A DNA stretch of 64,000 nucleotides from Macrostomum lignano (lineage: Eukaryota): the NCBI GenBank assembly GCA_002269645.1, contig NIVC01003217.1, forward strand, positions 46,559 through 110,558, in the 5' to 3' direction. The notes beneath the pieces are model-generated. The model was given only the letters and a program-made list of their open reading frames with translations. It was not told the DNA's origin and searched no databases. Positions within the stretch are counted from its first letter, which is position 1. Each line of letters starts with the position of its first letter. Shown here in pieces: positions 1-48,232 of the stretch. Both the position numbers and the translations under genes were made by a program.

Positions 1-3000
1 GTTCAACCAGGAGAAGGCTGGAGCTCTGATTCGAGCGCACACGGCTGCCACGGTCACTGATGCGGACGATTGCAAAGTTGATTGCGAGCTGGTTGTTAAA
101 CTCTTGCAGGTTTGTTTTTTTAATGTTTTCTTTGATATTCATTTGAATCTCTTCTTCCGAGGTCCTTTTTGGTTGGAATGCTTCCTTCCGAGGTCCTTTT
201 TCGGAAGGCTTCCTTCCGTGGTCCTTTTTTCGGAAGGCTTCCTTCCGAGGTCCTTTTTCTGAAAACTTTCTTCCTTGGTCCTTTATTCTGAATACTTTCT
301 TCCGAGGTCCTTTTTTCTGAAAACTTTCTTCCGTGGTCATTTTTTCTGAAAACTTTCTTCCGTAGTCCTTTTTGGTTTGAATGGCTCTTCCTTCAGAGGT
401 CATTTTTCTACATAGTTCGGAAACTCGAGGATTCTATCCAGAATCCTTTGCTGTCGTCCTTCCAAATTATTTAGATTCGAAAATCTGCATTGCTTGTTTT
501 TCCATTTGCTCTACTTACAGTAGCAACCAACAAACGCATTTTTTCGTTAAATTTAATCAGGCCATTCACCAGACCTATCCGATGCAACCAGACAAGCGAA
601 GCGGCGCAGTGCTAATCTTTGTGCCCGGATTCGAGGACATCATGTCACTCTATCAGATGATTCGTCAGTCTGCGCTGCCGTTCGCTCGAGTTGCTATGCT
701 ATTCGTGCTGCACTCCCAGCTGCGATTAGACGATCAGAAAGCGGTGCGATTTTGCTGAGTTTGTTGTGCTTTCTATTCGCCGCAACGGTACTTAGTACCA
801 CTATTGAGCAATCCATCACTGCCTGACCTTTGAGCAATCCCCTCATCGCAGGTGTTCCGCCCGACGCCCCCAGATCGCCGCAAAATCATCCTAGCCACAA
901 ACATCGCAGAGACCTCCCTAACAATAGACGATGTCAGCTTTGTAATCGACACCGGCTTAGCTAAAGAGAAATGGCTCGACGCTGGCACCGGCATTGTGAC
1001 CTTCCAATGCGCCTGGATTGCCCAGAGCAGCGCCAATCAACGCCGCGGTCGTTGCGGTCGCTGCGGCCCGGGCATCTGCTTTCGTCTGTACACCAGACAG
1101 CGGTTCGCTTCGCTTCAGCCCTACCCTCTGCCCGAGATTAGTCGCTACCCGTTAGAGGAGCTCTGCTTGCAGAGTCGACTGTTGGTACCTTCACCAGATA
1201 GTGTGCTAACTACTACTGCTGCTTCTGCTGCTACTAACAGTAGCGTAGCCGGCGTTACTATTGCCGATTTTCTCGGAAAAACATTGGAGCCGCCGCCGAT
1301 TGAAAATATTCGCGCGTCCGTGGCCCTGCTGAAAGAGATGGACGCGCTGGATGCGTTTGAGGTCTCTTGTTCTACTCTTGTTCTATTCTCTGCCCTACTC
1401 TTGTTCTATTCTCTGCCCTACTCTTGTTCTATCTTTACTCTACTCTTGTTCTATTTTTACTCTACTCTTGTTCTATCTTTACTCTACTCTTGTTCTATCT
1501 TTACTCTACTCTTGTTCTATCTCTACCCTACTCTTGTTCTATCTTTACTCTACTCTTGTTCTATTTTTACTCTACTCTTGTTCTATCTTTACTCTACTCT
1601 TGTTCTATCTCTACCCTACTCTTGTTCTATCTTTACTCTACTCTTGTTCTATTTTTACTCTACTCTTGTTCTATCTCTTACTCTACTCTTGTTCTATCTT
1701 TACTCTACTCTTGTTCTATCTTTACTCTACTCTTGTTCTATCTCTACCCTACTCTTGTTCTATCTCTACCCTACTCTTGTTCTATCTCTACCCTACTCTT
1801 GTTCTATCTCTACCCTACTCTTGTTCTATCTCTACCCTACTCTTGTTCTATCTCTACCCTACTCTTGTTCTATCTCTACCCTACTCTTGTTCTATCTCTA
1901 CCCTACTCTTGTTCTATCTCTACCCTACTCTTGTTCTATCTCTACCCTACTCTTGTTCTATCTTTACCCTACTCTTGTTCTATCTCTTACTCTACTCTTG
2001 TTCTATCTCTTACTCTACTCTTGTTCTATCTTTACTCTACTCTTGTTCTATCTTTACCCTACTCTTGTTCTATCTTTACTCTACTCTTGTTCTATCTTTA
2101 CTCTACTCTTGTTCTATCTCTTACTCTACTCTTGTTCTATCTCTACCCTACTCTTGTTCTATCTTTACCCTACTGTTCTATTTAGTGTATAAAAGTAGTG
2201 TATACAGCTCCTGAATTAAAAGCAGTCACTCTCACTGCCTCTAATCTCTCCCATCAGGACCTAACCGAACTCGGTTTGCACCTGTGCGACTTGCCAATCG
2301 AGCCTCGTCTAGCTAAAATGGTTCTAGTCAGCGTTATACTCAAATGCATCGATCCCGTGCTCACCATAGCCGCTATATTATCCTACCGCGAGCCATTCGT
2401 GATCCCATCTGAGCCGGGCAAACGCTCGGCCTCTGTGGCAGCCAGACGCAAATTTAGCGTCGATACCTACAGCGATCACATGTCGTTATTAAGAGCGTTT
2501 CAACAATGGCAGCGTGCTAGAAGCGAAGGCTGGGAGTCCAGCTTCTGCGAGCGGAATTACATTTCTGGCGCGGCGTTTGAAATGATTCTGGGCATCCGGA
2601 GTCAACTGTTGGGCCAGTTGAGGGCTAGCGCTTTTGTTAAAACTAAAGGCTCCGGGGATGTGCGAGATTTGAATACTAATTCTGAGAACTGGGCTGTAGT
2701 TAAAGCTGCTCTGGTGGCTGGCAGTTATCCCAATTTGGCTAAGGTAAGGGCTGAGTTTGGGTCATGTTTGCGTCATGGCAGGTTTGGGTCATGTTTGGGT
2801 CATTGTAGGTTCGGGTCATGTTTGGGTCATTGTAGGTTTGGGTCATCTTTGGGTCATTGTAGGTTTGGATCATGTTTAGGTCATTGCAGGTTTGGGTCAT
2901 CTTTGGGTCATTGTAGGTTTGGGTCATGTTTGGGTCATTGTAGGTTTAGGTCATGTTTGGGTCATTGCAGGTTTGGGTCATTGTAGGTTTGGGTCATGTT

Positions 3001-6000
3001 TGGGTCATGTTTGGGTCATTGTAGGTTCGGGTCATGTTTGGGTCATTGTAGGTTTGGATCATGTTTAGGTCATTGCAGGTTTGGGTCATGTTTAGATCAT
3101 TGTAGGTTTGGGTCATGTTTAAATCATTGTAGGTTCGGGTCATGTTTGGGTCATGTTTGGGTCATTGTAGGTTGAGGTCATGTTTGGGTCATTGCAGGTT
3201 TGGGTCATTGTAGATTAGGGTCATTGTAGGTTGGGTCATTGCAGGTTTGGGTCATTGTAAGTTTGGGTCATATTTGTGTCATTGTAGGTTTAGGTCATGT
3301 TTGCATCATATTGTAGGTTGTGTCATGTTTAGGTCATTGTAGGTTTGGGTCATGTTTGGGTCATTGTAGATTAGGGTCATTGTAGGTTTGGGTCATTTTT
3401 GGGTCATTTTAGGTTTAGGTCATGTTTGCATCATTGTAGGTTTGGGTCATGTTTGGGTCATTGTAGGTTTGGGTCATGTTTAGGTCATTGTAGGTTTGGA
3501 TCATGTTTGGGTCATTTTTAGGTTATTGTAGGCTTGGGTCATGTTTAAGTCATTGTAGATTTTGGTCATGTTTAGGTCATTGTAGGTTTGGATCATGTTT
3601 GGGTCATTTTTGGGTTATTGTAGGCTTGGGTCATGTTTGGGTCATTGTAGGTTTGGGTCATTTTTGGGTCATTTTAGGTTTAGGTCATGTTTGCATCATT
3701 GTAGGTTTGGGTCATTTTTGGGTCATTGTAGGTTTGGGTCATGTTTGGGTCATTGTAGATTTGGGTCATGTTTAGGTCATTGTAGGTTTGGATCATGTTT
3801 GGGTCATTTTTGGGTTATTGTAGGCTTGGGTCATGTTTGGGTCATTGTAGATTTTGGTCATGTTTAGGTCATTGTAGGTTTGGATCATGTTTGGGTCATT
3901 TTTGGGTTATTGTAGGCTTGGGTCATGTTTGGGTCATTGTAGGTTTAGGTCATTTTTGGGTCATTTTAGGTTTAGGTCATGTTTGCATCATTGTAGGTTT
4001 GGGTCATTTTTGGGTCATTGTAGGTTTGGGTCATGTTTGGGTCATTGTAGATTTGGGTCATGTTTAGGTCATTGTAGGTTTGGATCATGTTTGGGTCATT
4101 TTTGGGTTATTGTAGGCTTGGGTCATGTTTGGGTCATTGTAGGTTTGGGTCATGTTTGCATCATATTGTAGGTTTGGGTCATGTTTGGGTCATTGTAGAT
4201 TAGGGTCATTGTAGGTTTGGGTCATTTTTGGGTCATTTTAGGTTTAGGTCATGTTTGCATCATTTTAGGTTTGGGTCATGTTTGGGTCATTGTAGGTTTG
4301 GGTCATGTTTGGGTCATTGTAGATTTGGGTCATGTTTAGGTCATTGTAGGTTTGGATCATGTTTGGGTCATTTTTGGGTTATTGTAGGCTTGGGTCATGT
4401 TTGGGTCATTGTAGGTTTGGGTCATGTTTGGCTCATTGTAGGTTTGGGTCATTGTAGGTTTGGGTCATGTTTGGCTCATTGTAGGTTTGGGTCATTGTAG
4501 GTTTGGGTCATGTTTGGGTCATTGTAGGTTTGGGTCATGTTTGGGTCATGTTTAGGTCATTGTAGGTTAGGGTCATGTTTGCGTCATTGTAGGTTTGGGT
4601 CATGTTTGCGTCATTGTAGGTTTGGGTCATTTTTGGGTCATTGTAGGGTTGGTCATGTTTGGGTCATTTTAGGTTTGGGTCATGTTTGGGTCATTGTAGG
4701 TTTGGGTCATGTTTAGGTCATTGTAGGTTTGGATCATTTTTGGGTCATGTTTGGGTCATTGTAGGTTTGGATCATGTTTGGGTCATGTTTGGGTCATTGT
4801 AGATTAGAGTCATTGTAGATTTGGGTCATTGTAGTTTTTGGTCATTATAGATTTGGGTCATTGTAGACTCGGGTCATTGCATATTTGGGTCATTGCAGGT
4901 TTGGGTCATTTATGTACAATTCATATGTAATCAATCAGACTCACTCTACTCTCTCATCTATTTGCTCCCAGGTGGATCGCGAGCACCGCCGGCTCTACTC
5001 TCGCACAGTCCGATGCGTCCGCTTCCATCCGCAGAGCGTGCTCAGCCCCAGCGGACCCCAGGAGACCCACGCCAGCGCTGTGGACCAGCTGCCCAGCGAC
5101 TGGCTGATCTACAATGAAGCCGTGCGCACCGGCGGCGGCCGCATCGCTCACATCCGGTGCGCCACTCTGGTCAGCCCGGCTGCCGTCCTGCTGTTCGCCG
5201 GCTCCTGCCGCCTGCCAGCAGACTATGTTGCCAAGCTGGAGATGGCGCTGTCCACCGATCACCCGGCCGCCGCCGACTCAACTGCCTCCACGGCTGCGGG
5301 AGACTCCAACAGCGACAATGTCGATTTGAACGACGCCGCCGCTGACTCCGAAATCGACATCGGCGCCGACGCCGAACAAGGCCAAGGCGACGGAGATTTC
5401 GACGATGCCGATTTCGACGACGAAGATTTCGACGAATCAGACGACGAGCCTCGGGATCAGCAAAATCCTCAGGCTAAGCAGCGGCAGCGCAGGTCGCTGG
5501 CCATGTCCGTTGATAAGTGGATTCGAGTCCGGTCCGACCGAGAGTCGCTGCGCTGCCTACTGCAGCTGCGTTTGAAGCTCAGCGCCCTGCTGCTCAGGCG
5601 GATCCGGCATCCGGCTAAGCTGCTCAGCTTTCAAGACGAAGCCGTGCTCAAAGCTCTAGTCAATGTGCTCACCTACGAGGAGCAGGCGCTCGGCCTCCGC
5701 CAGCCGGCCGGGGTTGGCGCCAAACCGCGCCAGATTGGCGCCGCCGATTCTTTGTTCCGGCCGCCGCCGGAGCTGGCGCCATCAGAAGAGGAAGACGGAG
5801 GATCCAATATGGCTGCCGCCGCTGCTGCAGTCTGCGTTGATAAACCAGCCAGTCCGCTGCCGCCGCCGCCACCTCAGCAGCAGCTGCAGCCTCGCCTACA
5901 GCAAATGTCGCTGCATCAGCACCAGAAACAGCAGCAGCAGCAGCAGCAGCAGGGCCAGTACCAGCATCAGCAGCAGGTTTGTGTAAACTGCTTATAAATC

Positions 6001-10687: not shown

Positions 10688-13600
10688 ATGACAGACCCGT
10701 TTCTGCTCGATCAAGCAGCACTGGAGGCCCGACTCACGGCTCTCCAGGAGACATTCGAGCGTTGGAGAGAGATTAGAGATTGTCGAGATGTCGCCGAATT
10801 TGTTGCCAAAGCGGATGAGTTCAATTGGTTGCTGGGTGAGTCACTGATTGTTTAGAATGTTAGCTTCACCACTGCTTAGTGTAGATTCACCACTGCTTAG
10901 TGTAGATTCACCACTGTTTAGTGTAGATTCACCACTGTTTAGTGTAGATTCACCACTGTTTAGTGTAGATTCACCACTGTTTAATGTAGATTCACCACTG
11001 TTTAGTGTAGATTCACCACTGTTTAGTGTAGATTCACCACTGTTTAGTGTAGATTCACCACTGTTTAGTGTAGATTCACCACTGTTTAGTGTAGATTCAC
11101 CACTGTTTAGTGTAGATTCACCACTGTTTAGTGTAGATTCACCACTGTTTAGTGTAGATTCACCACTGTTTAGTGTAGATTCACCACTGTTTAGTGTAGA
11201 TTCACCACTGTTTAGTGTAGATTCACCACTGTTTAGTGTAGATTCACCACTGTTTAGTGTAGATTCACCACTGTTTAGTGTAGATTCACCACTGTTTAGT
11301 GTAGATTCACCACTGTTTAGTGTAGATTCACCACTGTTTAGTGTAGATTCACCACTGTTTAGTGTAGATTCACCACTGTTTAGTGTAGATTCACCACTGT
11401 TTAGTGTAGATTCACCACTGTTTAGTGTAGATTCACCACTGTTTAGTGTAGACTCACCACTGTTTAGTGTAGATTCACCACTGTTTAGTGTAGATTCACA
11501 ATTTTTTAGTGTAGATTTACCACTGCTTGTATACTATACCATCATTCACCAGCAGTTCACCATCATTCACCAGCAATTAACAATCATTCACCAGCCATTC
11601 AACGTCATTCACCAGCCATTCACCATCATTCACCAGCAATTCACCATCATTCACCAGCCATTCACCATCATTCACCAGCAATTCACCATCATTCACCAGC
11701 AATTCACCATCATTCACCAGCAATTAACAATCATTCACCAGCCATTCAACGTCATTCACCAGCCATTCACCATCATTCACCAGCAATTCACCATCATTCA
11801 CCAGCCATTCACCATCATTCACCAGCAATTCACCATCATTCACCAGCAATTCACCATCATTCACCAGCAGTTCACCATCATTCACCAGCAATTCACCATC
11901 ATTCATCAGCCATTCACCGTCATTCACCAGCCATTCACCATCATTCACTAGCCATTCACCATCATTCACCAGCCATTCACCATCATTCACCAGCAGTTCA
12001 CCATCATTCACCAGCAATTCACCATCATTCACCAGCAATTAACAATCATTCACCAGCCATTCACCATCATTCACCAGCCATTCACCATCATTCACCAGCC
12101 ATTCACCATCATTCACTAGCCATTCACCATCATTCACCAGCCATTCACCATCATTCACCAGCCATTCACTGTCATTCACCAGCCATTCACCATCATTCAC
12201 CAGCTATTCACCATCATTCACCAGCAATTCACCATCATTTACCAGCCATTCACCATCATTCACTAGCCATTCACCATCATTCACCAGCTATTCACCATCA
12301 TTCACCAGCAATCCACCATCATTCACCAGCCATTCACCAGCCATTCACCATCATTTACCTGCCATTCACCATCATTCACTAGCCATTCACCATCATTCAC
12401 CAGCCATTCACCATCATTCACCAGCCATTCACCATCATTCACTAGCCATTCACCATCATTTACCAGCCATTCACCATCATTCACCAGCAATTCACCATCA
12501 TTCATCAGCCATTCACCGTCATTCACCAGCCATTCACCATCATTCACCAGCAATTCACCATCATTCACCAGCCATTCACCATCATTCACCAGCAATTCAC
12601 CATCATTCACCAGCAATTAACAATCATTCACCAGCCATTCACCATCATTCACCAGCCATTTACCATCATTCACCAGCAATTCTCCATCATTCACCATCAT
12701 TCACCATCATTCACCAGCCATTCACCATCATTCACCAGCCATTCACCATCATTCACCAGCCATTCACCGTCATTCACCAGCTATTCACCATCATTCACCA
12801 GCAATTCTCCATCATTCACCAGCAATTAACAATCATTCACCAGCCATTCACCATCATTCACCAGCCATTCCCCATCATTCACCAGCCATTCACCATCATT
12901 CACCATCATTCACCATCATTCACCAGCCATTCACCATCATTCACCAGCCATTCACTATCATTCACCAGCCATTCACCGTCATTCACCAGCTATTCACCAT
13001 CATTCACCAGCAATTAACAATCATTCACCAGCAATTAACAATCATTCACCAGCCATTCACCATCATTCACTAGCCATTCACCATTATTCACCAGCCATTC
13101 ACCATCATTCACCAGCCATTCACCATCATTCACCATCATTCACCATCATTCACCAGCCATTCACCATCATTCACCAGCCATTCACTGTCATTCACTAGCC
13201 ATTCACCAGTGATTCACGTCTCCAATCAATCGCCAATTCACCTGTTAACCGTTTCCCCCCCCCAAACGCCGCAGTGGAAATTTCCCAGGGCATTAAGAAC
13301 GCCGGCTGGGATCTGGACGATCTGGAGGAGACGCTCAAAATGATGTCGGAGAGCCGGCAGCTGTCAATCAGCGAAGCCGATCACCGGAACCGGCGCCAGT
13401 TCATCGAGAACGCGCGCCAATTGCTGAGCCAAATCAGCGCCGAGACTTTCCCAGCGCCGCAGGGATCGTTGCCGATCAATTCGACCACTAATCAGTTGCC
13501 GGCCGACGCTGAACTGCTCACTAGCGGCGGTGTGGCCACTGTGGGTCGGCTGCACAGCCATCCGCATCATTACGTCGAGGAGCCGGCTAGCTTGGACCTG

Positions 13601-13867
13601 CTGGATCCCGGAGACGCATCGTACAGTAGCGGCGGCGGCGGCGTTAGTCGATGGAAACGACGCCTTGGACAGCTTGGCGCCGTCAAAGGCTGCTGCTGTT
13701 TCGCAACGCGACTTCGAGCGCGGATCTTCTTGGCGGCGCTGCTGGCGGCGCTGCTGCTGCTGCTGATTGTCGGCATCGCCACGGCTGTCGGCAGGAGCCG
13801 CGGCGGAGATGAAGGCAACAATGGCACAACGCTGGAAGCTTCCAGTCCGACAACGGCCGGTACTTAA
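10688..13867 (+). CDS. Syntaxin-6 N-terminal-domain membrane protein, paralogue 1 (246 aa). Exons 10688-10835, 13275-13867
   Basis: MTDPFLLDQ...FERWREI and IKNAGWDLDDLEETL...NRRQFIENARQ match the Syntaxin-6_N Habc pattern (DPF...WDLEDLDETI...RKAFI). Phase-1 intron gtgagt...cag. Hydrophobic TM segment IFLAALLAALLLLLIVGIATAV. Confidence 0.85.
10862..11530. repeat. 21-bp near-perfect minisatellite (ttcaccactgtttagtgtaga)
   Basis: Direct repeats in the intron of paralogue 1. Confidence 0.97.
11537..13215. repeat. 21-bp minisatellite (accatcattcaccagccattc)
   Basis: Second array in the same intron. Confidence 0.95.
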
Positions 13868-14029
13868 AATTGCATATTGAGTTCGGCTGAGCAAGCGGCT
13901 GGCTACTAATTGCCTTCCTATATATGTACTTTAAGCATGTACTTTAGTGAAGTATTATTAGTTTTTGAAGAGTCTGGACCGTTCGTTTTGGCTCGGCCTC
14001 AGGCAAGCCATTGATTTTAGCGCCTCAAC

Positions 14030-14330
14030 CCCCACTGGAAGGTAATTGGCGTCTCTATTAACCCCTTATCCACAGGCAGGAATTTTGGGCCTCAACCTCT
14101 CACTGCAGGTAATTGGGGCTCAACCCCCCCCCCCTACTGGCAGGTTATTAGAGCCTCAACCCCCCCCCCCACTGGCAGGCAATTGGGGCCTGCCTCAACA
14201 CCTCACTGCAGGCAATTGGGGCCTCAACCCTCCCCCCCCACTAGCAGGTAATTTGGGCTCAACCCCTCACTGCAGGTAATTGGGGCCCCAACCCCCCCCC
14301 CCTACTGGCAGGTAATTGGGGCCTCAACCC
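14030..14330. repeat. ~35-bp degenerate minisatellite (aggtaattggggcctcaacc(c)nactggc)
   Basis: Direct repeats with a variable poly-C run. Confidence 0.8.
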
Positions 14331-18319: not shown

Positions 18320-19170
18320 TACCAATGTACACTCAGTCAGAGACTCAGAGTCCTCACCCCACCAATGTACACTCAGCGGTCTCAGCCAGAGTCTATACCC
18401 TCTCACCCCACCAATGTACACTCAGTCAGAGACTCAGAGTCCTCACCCCACCAATGTACACTCAGCGGTCTCAGCCAGAGTCTATACCCTCTCACCCCAC
18501 CAATGTACACTCAGTCAGAGTCTATATAGCTTCTCACTCCACCAATGTACACTCAGTCAGAGTCTATATAGCTTCTCACCCCACCAATGTACACTCAGTC
18601 AGAGTCTAAAGCTTCTCACCCCACCAATGAACACTCAGTCAGAATCTCTTCTCACCCCACCAATGTACACTCAGTCAGAGTCTATACCCTCTCACCCCAC
18701 CAATGTACACTCAGTCAGACTCTAAAGCTTCTCACCCCACCAATGTACACTCAGTCAGAATCTATACCCTCTCACCCCACCAATGTACACTCAGTCAGAG
18801 TCTATACCCTCTCACCCCACCAATGTACACTCAGTCAGACTCTATACCCTCTCACCCCACCAATGTACACTCAGTCAGACTCTAAAGCTTCTCACCCCAC
18901 CAATGTACACTCAGTCAGAATCTATACCCTCTCACCCCACCAATGTACACTCAGTCAGACTCTATAGCTTCTCACCCCACCAATGTACACTCAGTCAGAG
19001 TCTATAGCTTCTCACCCCACCAATGTACACTCAGTCAGAGTCTATAGCTTCTCACCCCACCAATGTACACTCAGTCAGAGTCTATAGCTTCTCACCCCAC
19101 CAATGTACACTCAGTCAGAGTCTATAGCTTCTCACCCCACCAATGTACACTCAGTCAGAGTCTATATATA
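18320..19170. repeat. ~40-bp minisatellite (ctcaccccaccaatgtacactcagtcagagtctata...)
   Basis: Direct repeats. On the - strand they are bounded by a gtgagt donor near 19178 and a tttcag acceptor near 18308, so probably a 5' UTR intron of paralogue 2. Confidence 0.9.
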
Positions 19171-19667: not shown

Positions 19668-20017
19668 CGGGTGTACATTGGAGATAAGGGCTGGTTCTTA
19701 GCGAGTGTACATTGGAGATAAGGGCTGGTTCTTAGCGAGTGTACATTGGAGATAAGGGCTGGTTCTTAGCGAGTGTACATTGGAGATAAGAGCTGATTCT
19801 TAGCGAGTGTACATTGGAGATAAGGGCTGGTTCTTAGCGAGTGTACATTGGAGATAAGGGCTGGTTCTTAGCGAGTGTACATTGGAGATAAGGGCTGGTT
19901 CTTAGCGAGTGTACATTGGAGATAAGAGCTGATTCTTAGCGAGTGTACATTGGAGATAAGGGCTGGTTCTTAGCGAGTGTACATTGGAGATAAGGGCTGA
20001 TTCTTAGCGAGTGTACA
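19668..20017. repeat. 34-bp minisatellite (gcgagtgtacattggagataagggctggttctta)
   Basis: About 10 near-identical units. Confidence 0.95.
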
Positions 20018-35761: not shown

Positions 35762-40548
<4,787 letters not shown>

Positions 40549-40639
40549 GGTTTGCTTTTTTGTTTTGATTCAGAAATTTTTTTCTATGAAGCTTTACAAA
40601 CTTGTGACACAAAGTCTGAAGCACCGCAATGTATAAATA

Positions 40640-41205
40640 GGGGTGGATTGGAATGGGGCTCAGTCGGCAGCGAGTGTACATTGGGGTAGATTGGAATGGG
40701 GCTTAGTCGGGAGCGAGTGTACATTGGGGTGGGGTTGGAATGGGGCTCAGTCGGCAGCGAGTGTACATTGGGTGGGGTTGGAATGGGGCTTAGTCGGGAG
40801 CGAGTGTACATTGGGGTGGGGTTGGAATGGGGCTCAGTCGGCAGCGAGTGTACATTGGGTGGGGTTGGAATGGGGCTTAGTCGGGAGCGAGTGTACATTG
40901 GGGTGGGGTTGGAATGGGGCTTAGTCGGGAGCGAGTGTACATTGGGTGGGGTTGGAATGGGGCTTAGTCGGGAGCGAGTGTACATTGGGGTGGGGTTGGA
41001 ATGGGGCTCAGTCGGGAGCGAGTGTACATTGGGGTGGGGTTGGAATGGGGCTCAGTCGGGAGCGAGTGTACATTGGGGTGGGGTTGGAATGGGGCTCAGT
41101 CGGGAGCGAGTGTACATTGGGTGGGGTTGGAATGGGGCTCAGTCGGGAGCGAGTGTACATTGGGTGGGGTTGGAATGGGGCTCAGAAGGGAGCGAGTGTA
41201 CATTA
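40640..41205. repeat. ~44-bp G-rich minisatellite (gcgagtgtacattggggtggggttggaatggggctcagtcggga)
   Basis: Direct repeats upstream of the MYORG ATG. Confidence 0.95.
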
Positions 41206-42328: not shown

Positions 42329-42934
42329 TCAAGGCTCTTCCCTATACTTAGGGAACACATTATTCCTTCTCTTATTTCTATACTTGAGCGAATTGTAATT
42401 ATTCAGCTGAATAATGGACCGCCTAGTGGGCATAAACTCCTTCATATACTCGTCTTGCACCGATAGGCGCCGGAAATTTCTCAGAAACTCGCTGCCCCGA
42501 CTCAGCCGAGTGTAATTGGGCCCGACGTAGAGATCTTTCGGCGTGACCTCGCCCTCGCCCAGTATGTCAATGTAGTCGTTCTGACCAAACAGAGCCTGCT
42601 TCGGGTGCCAGTCATCAATAGGCTGATACGGCGGCATCACCACCGGCGCCTCGTGTCTGGGATCCTTTAGCCGCGGCAGCAGGCCGCCGTTCTGCATCGG
42701 CCGGGCTTTCCTAGCGAGATCTCTCGACTCAGGCAGCAGGTATGAGTCAGCTGTGGTGGCCTGTTTACCACTAGCTGAAGACTCTGTTGTCAAGGCATTG
42801 GCTTCTGTTGCTAGGCGATCGAGAAATCCGCGCCAATAGCTGTACCGTTCGCTGCTCAGGTGTCTCAGCTGTAGTAGTGGTCTAATACGCTGCATAGTAC
42901 TCATCATACTACTGCTAGTAAGTAGGGTTGGCAT
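42329..42934 (-). CDS. MRPL51: Mitochondrial ribosomal protein L51 (201 aa)
   Basis: DDWHPKQALFGQNDYIDILG...PKDL..GP...RGSEF matches the invertebrate mL51 signature as I recall it. The basic N-terminus resembles a presequence. Confidence 0.82.
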   Translation of the reverse strand: MPTLLTSSSMMSTMQRIRPLLQLRHLSSERYSYWRGFLDRLATEANALTTESSASGKQATTADSYLLPESRDLARKARPMQNGGLLPRLKDPRHEAPVVMPPYQPIDDWHPKQALFGQNDYIDILGEGEVTPKDLYVGPNYTRLSRGSEFLRNFRRLSVQDEYMKEFMPTRRSIIQLNNYNSLKYRNKRRNNVFPKYREEP

Positions 42935-42999
42935 TGCTGCTGAACAGCAATTGGGAACATGGACTTAAGGCTATTGCATTGTATTTGTGATGCAATGGC

Positions 43000-44042
43000 T
43001 CACAATCTCACCTGTAGCTTAATCTCATGTCTGTGCTCATAATCTCACTTGTAGCTTAATCTCATGTCTGTGCTCATAATCTCACCTGTAGCTTAATCTC
43101 ATGTCTGTGCTCATAATCTCACCTGTAGCTTAATCTCATGTCTGTGCTCATAATCTCACCTGTAGCTTAATCTCATGTCTGTGCTAACAATCTCACCTGT
43201 AGTTTAATCTCATGTCTGTGCTCATAATCTCACCTGTAGCTTAATCTCATGTCTGTGCTCATAATCTCACCTTTAGCTTAATCTCATGTCTGTGCTAACA
43301 ATCTCACCTGTAGTTTAACCTCATGTCTGTGCTCACAATTTCACCTGTAGCTTAATCTCATGTCTGTGCTCACAATCTCATCTGTAGCTTAATGTCATGT
43401 CTGTGTTTACAATCCCACCTGTAGCTTAATCTCATGTCTGTGTTTACAATCTCACCTGTAGTTTAATATCATGTCTGTGTTTACAATCCCACCTGTAGCT
43501 TAGTCTCATGACTGTGCTTACAATCTCATCTGTAGCTTAATGTCATGTCTGTGTTTACAATCCCACCTGTAGCTTAATCTCATGTCTGTGTTTACAATCT
43601 CACCTGTAGTTTAATATCATGTCTGTGTTTACAATCCCACCTGTAGCTTAGTCTCATGTCTGTGCTCACAATCTCATCTGTAGCTTAATGTCATGTCTGT
43701 GTTTACAATCCCACCTGTAGCTTAATCTCATGTCTGTGTTTACAATCCCACCTGTAGCTTAATCTCATGTCTGTGTTTACAATCTCACCTGTAGCTTAGT
43801 CTCATGACTGTGCTTACAAACTCACCTGTAGCTTAGTCTCATGTCTGTGCTTACAATCTCATATGTAGGCTAATCTCATCTCTATATACTCACAATCTCA
43901 TATGTAGGCTAATCTCATCTCTATATACTCACAATCTCATATGTAGGCTAATCTCATCTCTATATACTCACAATCTCATATGTAGGCTAATCTCATCTCT
44001 ATATACTCACTATTTCACCTGTAGCCTAACCTCATCTCTATA
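43000..44042. repeat. 37-bp minisatellite (aatctcacctgtagcttaatctcatgtctgtgctcat)
   Basis: Direct repeats upstream of MRPL51. Confidence 0.95.
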
Positions 44043-44314
44043 TCAACTGTATAAAAGTTATGAAATAAAAAAGCATAATGCGCATTTAGCATGAAATTAG
44101 GAAATTCAACGAGTTTTATTTGAGTGAGTTTCGCTTTCTACAAAATGGTAAGATCAACATACTTATGCTCGTACTGTACTTTTCAATTTTCAGCATAAAT
44201 GATCTTACACAGGCTACTAAAAGTAAGTAATTCAAAACTAAGATTATTTTAACTAAAAAACAATGAACTTAACTAACAGTATCATGACGACTTGATTTAA
44301 GATTGTTGTGACGA

Positions 44315-44470
44315 TTCTAAAATTTGGGATTTCTGGGGCGATTTTCGAATTTTGGATTTTGAGGGCGATTTTCGAATTTGGGATCTTTCGGTCTCAAAGT
44401 TGGGATTTTTGGGCGATTCTTGAGGGGCTTCTTGAGAGGGGATTCTTGAGAGGATTTTTGAGGGGCGATA
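44315..44470. repeat. Short degenerate repeat (gggcgattttcgaattt / gggcgattcttgag)
   Basis: Related to the gggcgattctt arrays at 55320-58650. Confidence 0.7.
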
Positions 44471-44554
44471 CTTAATTTCTGTGTCTTCAACCAACCAAAC
44501 ACATCCCCAAAAGCGCAGCACACAACTGTCTGGGTAGCAGTGGGAGCCGGGAGC

Positions 44555-44836
44555 TCACTCAGACTTGTCATCCTCATCAAACAGCCGGCGGTACACAGAC
44601 TCCGGCAGAATCAGTCGCTGTTTATCTTTGAAATTAATAAACCATCTTTCTCTCCAACTTAGCGACTCCATTCTTTGCAATTCGGCTCTAGATTGGGCGG
44701 TTAAAAATCGATAACGGTCCTCTGACAGGTAGATGGCCGACCCACTTAAACCAAGCATTGTGGCGAGCGACAGAAACGGGTGCTGAACTGTGAACACGCG
44801 CGCCTCCCAGAAACATCGACGTAAAAATAGTAGCAT
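44555..44836 (-). CDS. Small single-TM protein (93 aa), family not recognised
   Basis: ATG-initiated, non-repetitive ORF with hydrophobic segment FLSLATMLGLSGSAIYL. Preceded by an acceptor (tactaattacag, exon start 44874) with an in-frame upstream stop. Confidence 0.55.
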   Translation of the reverse strand: MLLFLRRCFWEARVFTVQHPFLSLATMLGLSGSAIYLSEDRYRFLTAQSRAELQRMESLSWRERWFINFKDKQRLILPESVYRRLFDEDDKSE

Positions 44837-45049
44837 AGTAACCGGGGAATCTCAGGATTTGCACCGAGGAATACCTGTAATTAGTAAGGCAGTTTAATAA
44901 TTAATTAGGGATTAAAATCATTTCACGTTGGCTGCCCCGATCCAGTGTTTACGGTCAGTCATTCACCCCAATTATCCAGGGTCCATTTACACAACCACCT
45001 ACTAATCCACGGCCCGACAATCACCCCTAATTATATAGGTTGCGCAAAA

Positions 45050-45378
45050 ACCAACCCTGATTATCCAGGGCCCACCACCACCCCTTGATTATCCAGGGCT
45101 CACCAACCACTCCTGATTATCCAGGGCTCGCCAACCACCCCTAATTATCCAGGGCTCGCCAACCACCCCTAATTATCCAGGGCTCGCCAACCACCCCTAA
45201 TTATCCAGGGCTCGTTAACCACCCCTGATTATCTAGGGCTCGCCAACCACCCCTGATTATCTAGGGCTCGCCAACCACCCCAGATTATCTAGGGCTCACC
45301 AACCACCCCTGACTATCCAAGGCTCGCAAACCACCCCTGATTATCCAGGGCCCACCAACCACCAATAATTATCCAGGG
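45050..45378. repeat. 28-bp minisatellite (ccacccctaattatccagggctcgccaa)
   Basis: Lies inside the predicted intron 45403-44875. Confidence 0.9.
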
Positions 45379-45403
45379 GTCGTCACAAGCTCACGCAACT
45401 AAC

Positions 45404-45634
45404 CTAATCACGCTTAGGCGTTTCAGCAACTGTGCTACTTTTGCTGCTGCTGCTATTGCTCGAATTTCCCGCGAATAATTCAAATCGCTTCGTCAACGAA
45501 CGGTCAAATTCTTCAATCCGTTGCTTGGAAGTCGGATGCACTATTTTGTCGTTGTGCTGCAACAGGTACCAGGAATAAAATGCCAAAGATATCCCACCAA
45601 GCACTGCAACGGATCCAAAGTATGCTGCTTTCAT
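45404..45634 (-). CDS. Small N-terminal-TM protein (76 aa), family not recognised
   Basis: ATG-initiated ORF MKAAYFGSVAVLGGISLAFYSWYLL. The stop codon is followed immediately by the donor-like GTTAGT. Confidence 0.55.
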   Translation of the reverse strand: MKAAYFGSVAVLGGISLAFYSWYLLQHNDKIVHPTSKQRIEEFDRSLTKRFELFAGNSSNSSSSKSSTVAETPKRD

Positions 45635-46429: not shown

Positions 46430-47212
46430 GTTTGGGAGTGTACATTGGGGTAAAGGGTTGGGGAGTGTACATTGGGGTAGGGGGTAAGGGTTAGGGAGTG
46501 TGCATTGGGGTAGGGGGTAAGGGTTGGGGAGTGTGCATTGGGGCAGGGGGTAAGGGTTAGGGAGTGTACATTGGGGCAGAGGGTAAGGGTTGGGAGTGTA
46601 CATTGGGGTAGGGGGTAAGGGTTGGGGAGTGTGCATTGGGGCAGGGGGTAAGGGTTGGGGAGTGTACATTGGGATAGGGGGTAAGGGTTGGGGAGTGTGC
46701 ATTGGGGCAGGGGATAAGGGTTGGGGAGTGTACATTGGGATAGGGGGTAAGGGTTGGGGAGTGTACATTGGGGCAGAGGGTAAGGGTTGGGAGTGTACAT
46801 TGGGGTACGGGGTAAGGGTTAGGGAGTGTGCATTGGGGCAGGGGGTAAGGGTTGGGGAGTGTACATTGGGATAGGGGGTAAGGGTTGGGGGGTGTGCATT
46901 GGGGCAGGGGGTAAGGGTTGGGGAGTGTACATTGGGGTAAGGGGTAAGGGTTGGGGAGTGTGCATTGGGGTAAGGGGTAAGGGTTTGGGAGTGTACATTG
47001 GGGTAGGGGGTAAGGGTTGGGGAGTGTACATTGGGGTAGGGGGTAAGGGTTGGGGAGTGTGCATTGGGGCAGGGGGTAAGGGTTGGGGAGTGTGCATTGG
47101 GGCAGGGGGTAAGGGTTAGGGAGTGTACATTGGGGCAGAGGGTAAGGGTTGGGGAGTGTACATTGGGACAGGGGGTAAGGGTTGGGGAGTGAATGGTAAG
47201 GGGGTAAGGGTT
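46430..47212. repeat. G-rich minisatellite (ggagtgtacattggggtagggggtaagggttgg)
   Basis: Direct repeats. Confidence 0.93.
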
Positions 47213-47889: not shown

Positions 47890-48232
47890 TTGTACATTCT
47901 GGCGGGTGAAAAGCGAGGGACGGGGGAGAGAATGTACATTAGTGGGCTAGCTGGCGGACGGGGGAGAGAATGTACATTAGTCGGCTAGCTGGCGGACGGG
48001 GGAGAGAATGTACATTAGTCGGCTAGCTGGCGGACGGGGGAGAGAATGTACATTAGTCGTCTAGCTGGCGGACGGGGGGGAGATGTACATTAGCCGGCTA
48101 GCTGGGGGACGGGGGAGGGATAGTACTTTAGTCGGCTAGCTGGGGGACGGGAGAGAGTGTACATTAGTCAGCTAATTGGGGGACGGGAGAGTGTACATTA
48201 GTCGGCTAGCTGGAGGACGGGGAGCGAGTGTC
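47890..48232. repeat. ~38-bp minisatellite (gagaatgtacattagtcggctagctggcggacggggga)
   Basis: Direct repeats just downstream of the MPV17 stop codon. Confidence 0.88.

Follow-up and report, generated by a model that had tools for sequence, protein, structure and literature searches.

Gene content of the locus

We analyzed a 64-kb stretch of the genome of the flatworm Macrostomum lignano (hereafter the window), in which two small open reading frames (ORFs), smORF1 and smORF2, lie in tandem with the gene MRPL51. All coordinates are those of the window, and the three ORFs and their signals are on the minus strand. The window belongs to scaffold NIVC01003217.1 of assembly Mlig_3_7 (GCA_002269645.1), with 0 mismatches over 8,866 unique nucleotides, and locus L003 of this scaffold is identical to it. 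Four copies of the locus were compared, including two paralogous or duplicated ones, L001 and L002, whose unique noncoding sequence diverges by ~2.2% and ~0.8%, respectively. An earlier reading of the sequence (the original prediction) had proposed that the three ORFs form one unit, either a cis-spliced bi- or tricistronic mRNA or an operon resolved by spliced leader (SL) trans-splicing. Every sequence feature on which it was built was found again on the minus strand, at the same coordinates.

The first ORF, smORF1 (45634 to 45404), encodes 76 amino acids and has no coding sequence (CDS) in GenBank. The second, smORF2 (44836 to 44555), encodes 93 amino acids and corresponds to a hypothetical GenBank protein (P0001); its exact protein sequence is an NCBI protein on three contigs of GCA_002269645.1. 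The third, MRPL51 (mL51; 42934 to 42329), is a single exon of 201 codons. Its product was recognized over residues 100 to 188 by the Pfam family PF10244 (MRP-L51) with 67.3 bits (cutoff, 25; E = 1.3e-18), and its homologues carry the name 39S ribosomal protein L51. The gene order on the minus strand is a Mpv17/PMP22-family gene, smORF1, smORF2, MRPL51 and a gene of glycoside hydrolase family 31 (GH31), and a PQ-loop gene converges on the cluster from the opposite strand. From smORF1 to GH31 the strand is minus throughout with nothing in between, which is the same-strand adjacency used as an operon criterion in this species (PMC8629364).

The genome annotation cut "transcriptional units" at peaks of SL reads and poly(A) reads with the TBONE pipeline (PMC5730564). 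In GenBank, smORF2 and MRPL51 are separate gene models. The MRPL51 CDS is a single-exon, 5'-partial model (SAAM...) that runs from TCAGCAGCAATG (42943), a start that no in-frame stop directly precedes; because it is 5' partial, the transcript model must start at most 11 nt upstream of the ATG. The separate models and this short upstream part together argue against a mature mRNA joining smORF2 to MRPL51, and the annotated 5' end is compatible with one of the SL type. The CDS of the next gene, GH31, begins at 40569, a position that lies 21 nt upstream of its ATG and adjoins a preceding in-frame TGA. In L002, the MRPL51 ORF (12807 to 13412 of that copy) is intact and has 100% amino acid identity, and it is unannotated; a repeat-derived ORF of 94 amino acids (PSLPSPRP...) at 13825 to 14109, ~400 nt downstream of MRPL51, is annotated as a protein instead.

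Promoter-like, splice-like and polyadenylation signals

M. lignano has one 35-nt SL, CGGTCTCTTACTGCGAAGACTCAATTTATTGCATG, its cis-donor consensus is GT[G/A]AG, and [T/C]TNCAG is the leading motif at its SL acceptors (PMC8629364). Upstream of smORF1, two TATA-like boxes (TATAAAA from 45699 and TATAAAT from 45668, within 45699 to 45663) form a candidate promoter of the first gene, and both are kept in all four copies. No consensus SL acceptor was found near smORF1, and the sole CAG close to its ATG reads CAC in L001.

A pair of donor-like sites follows the smORF1 stop (45403 to 45390), with TAG/GTTAGT at 45403 and TGC/GTGAGC at 45394. Both are kept in all copies; only the second, whose GTGAG lies 9 nt past the stop, fits the donor consensus, and GTTAGT departs from it. 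The spacer then contains a 28-bp minisatellite of ~12 copies (45382 to 45049), the copy number of which varies among paralogues. A stretch ending in tactaattacag terminates at 44875, 529 nt past the end of smORF1, so that the next exon base would be 44874. The acceptor itself, tactaatTACAG (44886 to 44875), is kept in all copies; it has a branch-point-like TACTAAT, and its TTACAG (44880 to 44875) fits the SL-acceptor motif. An ATTAAA at 44898 to 44893, the candidate poly(A) signal of a smORF1 mRNA, stands 24 nt before the acceptor AG and is likewise kept in all copies. Judged by these motifs, an ATTAAA abutting TTACAG is the layout expected where upstream 3'-end formation adjoins the next trans-splice site. 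Between the acceptor and the smORF2 ATG lies a leader of 38 nt (44874 to 44837) with an in-frame TGA.

Over the smORF2 stop, a donor-like GA/GTGAGC (44558 to 44553) fits the cis-donor consensus. It is followed by short tandem arrays with periods of 12 to 27 bp in the putative 3' untranslated region (UTR) of smORF2 (44473 to 44321), by an AATAAA at 44120 to 44115, 435 nt past the stop, which is the candidate poly(A) signal of smORF2, and by a 37-bp minisatellite of ~28 copies (44043 to 42998). Each unit of the latter contains CTACAG/GTGAG, so an SL-acceptor motif directly abuts a cis-donor consensus ~28 times in the putative outron. Finally, the tandem acceptor TTCAGCAG (ttcagcag; 42944 to 42937) has two AGs, which stop 5 and 2 nt short of the MRPL51 ATG. 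As the original prediction had also noted, neither splice fuses the ORFs in frame: with 44559 joined to 42939 or to 42936, smORF2 merely gains DSNANPTY or DNANPTY and a stop. A smORF1-smORF2 fusion protein was rejected, since a TGA closes the smORF2 frame within the leader and smORF1 reaches its stop before its donor.

The spacers differ in length among the copies. The one between smORF1 and smORF2, including the leader, is 567 nt long (821 nt in L001), and that between smORF2 and MRPL51 is 907, 1,620 or 2,524 nt; the TATA boxes, ATTAAA and acceptors are constant across copies, while the array lengths vary freely. In M. lignano, tandem repeats are known to inflate operon spacers, and the repeat-adjusted distance peaks at ~100 bp, with an operon criterion of <1 kb (PMC8629364). 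Subtracting the 334-nt array from the 529 nt of the first spacer leaves 195 nt, or ~0 to 20 nt when measured from the 3' end defined by ATTAAA. The second spacer of 1,620 nt contains ~1,170 nt of arrays and so retains ~450 nt from the stop; from AATAAA to the MRPL51 acceptor there are ~1,155 nt, of which 1,046 nt are the 37-bp array and ~110 nt of unique sequence remain. Both repeat-adjusted spacers are thus below the 1-kb limit of PMC8629364.

To put these signals in proportion, their densities in unique sequence were 0.0013 per nt for GTRAG, 0.0025 per nt for YTNCAG and 0.0021 per nt for A[AT]TAAA. At such densities, the chance of finding each signal at its site is a few percent, and a TGA stop, once present, would be overlain by a GTGAG in ~1 of 16 cases. 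The combination of signals exceeds chance, but the signals were picked post hoc.

Coding potential of smORF1 and smORF2

Comparison of the copies supports coding constraint on both small ORFs at the sequence level. Together they had a single substitution, a synonymous one, in 1,026 site comparisons, versus 38 in 2,111 in local unique noncoding sequence; MRPL51 had 5 in 1,212 among paralogues. The synonymous nucleotide change falls in smORF1, which has 100% amino acid identity across the four copies, and the nucleotide sequence of smORF2 is identical in all of them. In L001, 3 changes were found in the 38-nt leader versus 0 in the 282 nt of the adjoining smORF2 CDS. The smORFs are therefore ~10-fold less diverged among paralogues than the unique sequence flanking them. 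We also used a codon log-likelihood score trained on ~2,000 codons of other genes in the window. By this measure smORF2 scored 0.174 versus 0.198 for held-out MRPL51, and 1 of 16 control ORFs scored higher. ORF length alone was a weak sign of coding. In a Markov simulation of the 896 nt of local unique sequence, one ATG-initiated ORF of at least 76 amino acids on one strand had a probability of 0.13, and two such ORFs had a probability of 0.006.

Homology searches returned little for either ORF. Pfam at E ≤ 10 gave nothing for smORF1 or for smORF2, including smORF2 read from an internal Met, and PDB sequence searches with both gave nothing below E = 0.3. A word-indexed protein search detected no homologue of smORF1 and matched smORF2 only to itself. 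No true homologue of smORF2 was present among 1.84 billion representative proteins searched exhaustively with phmmer; two matches from that search (P0029 and P0030) were discarded as artefacts, being tandem-repeat proteins that sum scores over their repeats. As a control, the same kind of search was made with MRPL51, whose best match, in the brachiopod Lingula, had 46% identity, and near flatworm relatives are missing from the databases. Since the databases contain no close flatworm relatives even for MRPL51, the lack of homologues of the smORFs is uninformative. We regard smORF2 as probably a real, lineage-restricted protein.

The two ORFs had been described as single-transmembrane (TM) microproteins. 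This description suits smORF1, which is probably a small single-pass membrane protein according to its model: AlphaFold2 (AF2), run on the single sequence, predicted helices at residues 3 to 32 and 36 to 54 and a disordered Ser-rich tail, with a predicted local distance difference test (pLDDT) score of 72, and the 19-residue Kyte-Doolittle maximum was 1.44. It does not extend to smORF2, the AF2 model of which had a pLDDT of 51 and no TM helix and is unreliable; its Kyte-Doolittle maximum was 1.27.

A resemblance to SMIM20- and PIGBOS1-like proteins had been suggested as well, and the smORFs do resemble these two in being small and in having a hydrophobic segment at the N terminus; smORF1 and SMIM20 also have a loose GG.ISL..AFY..Y pattern in common. 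The resemblance did not survive comparison. Neither smORF matched the SMIM20 family (PF15061, DUF4538) or the PIGBOS1 family (PF23670) at E ≤ 10, and these families recognize human SMIM20 at 97 bits and human PIGBOS1 at 81 bits. In pairwise alignment, smORF1 and SMIM20 gave z = 1.1, which is at shuffle level, and PIGBOS1 gave z = -0.5 with smORF1 and z = 2.9 with smORF2, the latter losing significance once 10 tests are allowed for. Each human or yeast sequence used in these alignments is strongly recognized by Pfam and so is near the real one. Three further candidates for smORF2 were rejected, none having a Pfam match and all being at shuffle level: COX16 (PF14138; shared HPFL and RY; z = 0.24 and -0.2), NDUFB1 (PF08040; shared YL...LTA; z = 1.9) and MIC13/QIL1 (PF15884; z = 1.8).

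A lead of another kind came from PET100, a cytochrome c oxidase (COX) assembly factor. Human PET100 and smORF1 are of similar length (73 and 76 amino acids), and in both a charged helix comes after an N-terminal TM helix, an arrangement that in smORF1 is predicted by AF2. A local match, W..Q..P..Q.IEEF..L.KR.E, occupies the same position after the TM helix in both. Its Smith-Waterman score was 47 (z = 7.3), with p = 5e-5 by global shuffles and 8e-4 by shuffles that preserve segments, and phmmer with --max gave 8.4 bits (E = 9e-4 for 6 targets). The human PET100 sequence used here is recognized at 85 bits by the Pfam family PF09803. In the other direction, smORF1 went unreported by the Pet100 hidden Markov model (PF09803) even at E ≤ 10, a search in which the HMMER filters hide matches weaker than ~E = 0.1 to 0.25, and BLASTP with composition correction produced no alignment with human PET100. 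Unlike the human protein, smORF1 is devoid of the FPV and NQ residues of the TM region. PET100 has no entry in the PDB. The local similarity is weak and unconfirmed, and the identification of smORF1 as a divergent PET100 is tentative and, on balance, doubtful; smORF1 is possibly PET100-like and mitochondrial.

A candidate SL-resolved operon and its alternatives

We favor the reading that smORF1, smORF2 and MRPL51 form an operon resolved by SL trans-splicing, or are at least adjacent genes of the SL type, and put its probability at roughly 0.55 from the sequence evidence. Of the two forms that had been proposed for the unit, this one fits the organism, the TTACAG acceptor and the ATTAAA 24 nt upstream, and the cis-spliced mRNA is disfavored by the separate GenBank genes and the off-consensus GTTAGT. 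The RNA-processing steps are inferred from the annotation, the signals in the sequence and statistics published for the species as a whole. Transcription would begin at a promoter of the TATA type close before smORF1 and pass through smORF1, smORF2 and MRPL51, possibly into GH31. The smORF1 mRNA would be cleaved and polyadenylated after ATTAAA (44898), with its end at ~44880, and the 35-nt SL would be trans-spliced at TTACAG (44875), capping a smORF2 mRNA with the 38-nt leader. The smORF2 mRNA would end after AATAAA (44120), with poly(A) at ~44095, the 37-bp minisatellite would be thrown away as spacer or outron, and the SL would be trans-spliced at TTCAG/CAG, 2 to 5 nt before the MRPL51 ATG (42940/42937). 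The donor-like GT sites at both stop codons would be fortuitous or minor, and the minisatellites would serve as neutral filler, in line with what has been published on M. lignano operons.

The M. lignano SL ends in AUG. If spliced at 44874, it would open a 43-codon out-of-frame upstream ORF (uORF) over the smORF2 start, and if spliced at 42939 or 42936, one of 11 to 12 codons, also out of frame, over the MRPL51 start. Because these uORFs overlap their starts, both main ORFs would need leaky scanning.

In C. elegans operons of the SL2 type, a polycistronic precursor is resolved by upstream 3'-end formation coupled to downstream trans-splicing ~100 nt away, and housekeeping and mitochondrial genes are enriched. 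M. lignano differs from this system in having a single SL with no SL2 specialization, and the spacers here are kilobase-sized through minisatellites. The locus is closer to the SL operons described in M. lignano itself (Wudarski et al. 2017, PMC5730564; Ustyantsev and Berezikov 2021, PMC8629364). It shares with them the species, same-strand neighbors, a YTNCAG-type acceptor near the downstream ATG (at smORF2), a poly(A) signal just before the acceptor, spacers that tandem repeats have inflated and that retain ~100 nt of unique sequence, and a first gene that has a promoter-like region upstream and lacks an acceptor. In M. lignano, 18% of operon-assigned genes sit in operons headed by a non-trans-spliced gene, and ~30% of all genes undergo SL trans-splicing and ~15% belong to operons (PMC8629364). 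Unlike the described operons, two of the three cistrons here are very short orphan ORFs, and consensus cis-donors occur at both upstream stops and in every unit of the spacer array.

Several observations weigh against the operon. GTGAG donors stand right after both smORF stops, and 28 more are in the spacer array; by the rule of Conrad et al. (1993), quoted in PMC8629364, an upstream cis donor favors cis- over trans-splicing, so that these sites should favor cis-splicing. At MRPL51, the acceptors GTTCAG and CAGCAG fit only the CAG core of [T/C]TNCAG; this motif is found at only 44% of published SL sites. The annotated MRPL51 start (42943 to 42945) lies 4 to 6 nt upstream of the first exon start defined by an AG and follows no AG; the annotated 5' boundary fits neither acceptor exactly, unlike the prediction of a clean SL cut. 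The AATAAA at 44120 reads AGTAAA in L001 and L002 and is thus unfixed among the copies. For smORF1, GenBank has no annotation, and its codon score (0.016) equals the median of the control ORFs, the null. Lastly, the paralogues are only 1 to 2% diverged, so that substitutions are few, and many of the noncoding differences adjoin short arrays, which limits what the low divergence of the smORFs can carry.

Some of these points would suit three independent monocistronic genes, or two together with a noncoding upstream transcript, each with its own promoter in the AT-rich or repeat-rich spacers and with the splice motifs unused, an arrangement that we consider rather unlikely. The MRPL51 model begins at 42943 to 42945, not directly after an AG, and housekeeping genes whose start codons are close to the transcription start site also typically have a very short 5' UTR. 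Each motif alone has a few-percent chance of occurring, and 70% of M. lignano genes are not SL trans-spliced, although the fraction that is rises to ~45% among conserved genes (PMC8629364). Separate promoters are harder to reconcile with the lack of a TATA-like element at -30 of smORF2 or MRPL51, with a poly(A) signal directly against the smORF2 acceptor and with repeat-adjusted spacers (~0 to 20 and ~110 nt) that belong to the operon mode of the distribution in PMC8629364. The smORFs themselves could be untranslated, one or both being chance frames in a noncoding upstream transcript or in the MRPL51 outron and the GenBank smORF2 an artefact of ORF calling, a view that overlaps the other readings. 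The annotation does accept spurious ORFs, as the repeat-derived protein of L002 indicates; neither smORF has a homologue or a Pfam family, the smORF1 codon score is at the null median, the AF2 model of smORF2 is of low confidence, and one chance ORF of this length has P = 0.13. We think it unlikely all the same, given the ~10-fold lower divergence compared with the flanking unique sequence, the match of the smORF2 codon score to that of a bona fide gene and the P of 0.006 for two such ORFs in tandem; the missing homologues say little where even the MRPL51 control found only a 46% match in Lingula.

A mature cis-spliced bi- or tricistronic mRNA, in which donors 45403 or 45394 and 44558 pair with acceptors 44875 and 42940/42937, the minisatellites are excised and the downstream cistrons are reached by leaky scanning or reinitiation, appears very improbable. 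Its donors are present, with GTGAG 9 nt past the smORF1 stop and over the smORF2 stop in all copies, and smORF1, having no CDS of its own in GenBank, would fit a 5' exon of the smORF2 gene model. However, the GTGAG over the TGA stop is a ~1-in-16 coincidence, GTTAGT is off consensus, smORF2 and MRPL51 are annotated apart and the MRPL51 model has no upstream exon. Moreover, a splice from 44559 to either MRPL51 acceptor (42939 or 42936) would carry smORF2 out of frame across the MRPL51 ATG and bury the start. Dicistronic animal mRNAs with upstream microproteins, whether cis-spliced or unspliced, are alike in that small ORFs precede a conserved gene on the same strand, possibly with a common mitochondrial theme, and unlike in that the annotation here separates the cistrons and splicing would hide the start of MRPL51 in the product. 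Acceptors are often used for both cis- and trans-splicing in parasitic flatworms, but cis-splicing is reported to be very rare and deleterious at the acceptors that resolve polycistrons (PMC12582326). A mixed scheme, in which the stop-codon donors are functional, cis-splicing excises the spacers in competition with SL trans-splicing at the same acceptors, and the cis/trans ratio sets the output of two mitochondrial microproteins (one PET100-like) against that of MRPL51, strikes us as a long shot.

Neighboring genes and tandem repeats in the window

The gene of the Mpv17/PMP22 family, a mitochondrial inner-membrane family, lies upstream of smORF1, shares the strand of the smORFs and MRPL51 and extends over 54836 to 48305. 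A DEAH-type helicase-like gene with repeat-filled introns is found on the plus strand at the left end of the window (381 to 6000). On the minus strand, 26881 to 23961 contains ORFs of 672 and 278 amino acids with integrase-like, protease-like and zinc-knuckle gag-like sequence, and is probably an insertion of a long terminal repeat retrotransposon by these features. No SL RNA gene or Rfam family was found within the window. A reconstruction of the GH31 exons for a local calibration of splice sites was abandoned after it yielded 192 equally valid solutions.

As much as 35% of the 64 kb is tandem repeat detectable by Tandem Repeats Finder, with arrays in introns and in nearly every intergenic spacer; the repeat giving ...CLSV... 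translations inside GH31 (~36250 to 37100) is an intronic example. An 11-mer core, AATGTACAYTC, occurs 62 times versus 0.13 expected, within at least five separate minisatellite arrays with unit lengths of ~33 to 44 bp: 18324 to 19152 (plus strand) and, on the minus strand, 19703 to 19985, 40672 to 41204, 46436 to 47164 and 47930 to 48199. In sequence, these arrays look like a family built around one common core.

Implications

The locus is probably ordinary and similar to the thousands of SL operons already described in M. lignano. If the operon is real, it would be one more among the ~ten thousand catalogued operon genes of this species and would add little alone. As an unannotated candidate membrane microprotein of 76 amino acids, smORF1 is of modest value. 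Should it be a divergent PET100, the cluster would join a COX assembly factor to an orphan small protein and MRPL51, with the Mpv17-family gene upstream, and would be a functionally coherent mitochondrial operon. The locus also offers a clean test case that sets an SL acceptor against consensus cis-donors, one at each upstream stop and 28 in the array, and it illustrates how minisatellites can inflate the spacers of flatworm operons without disturbing the signals that flank them.

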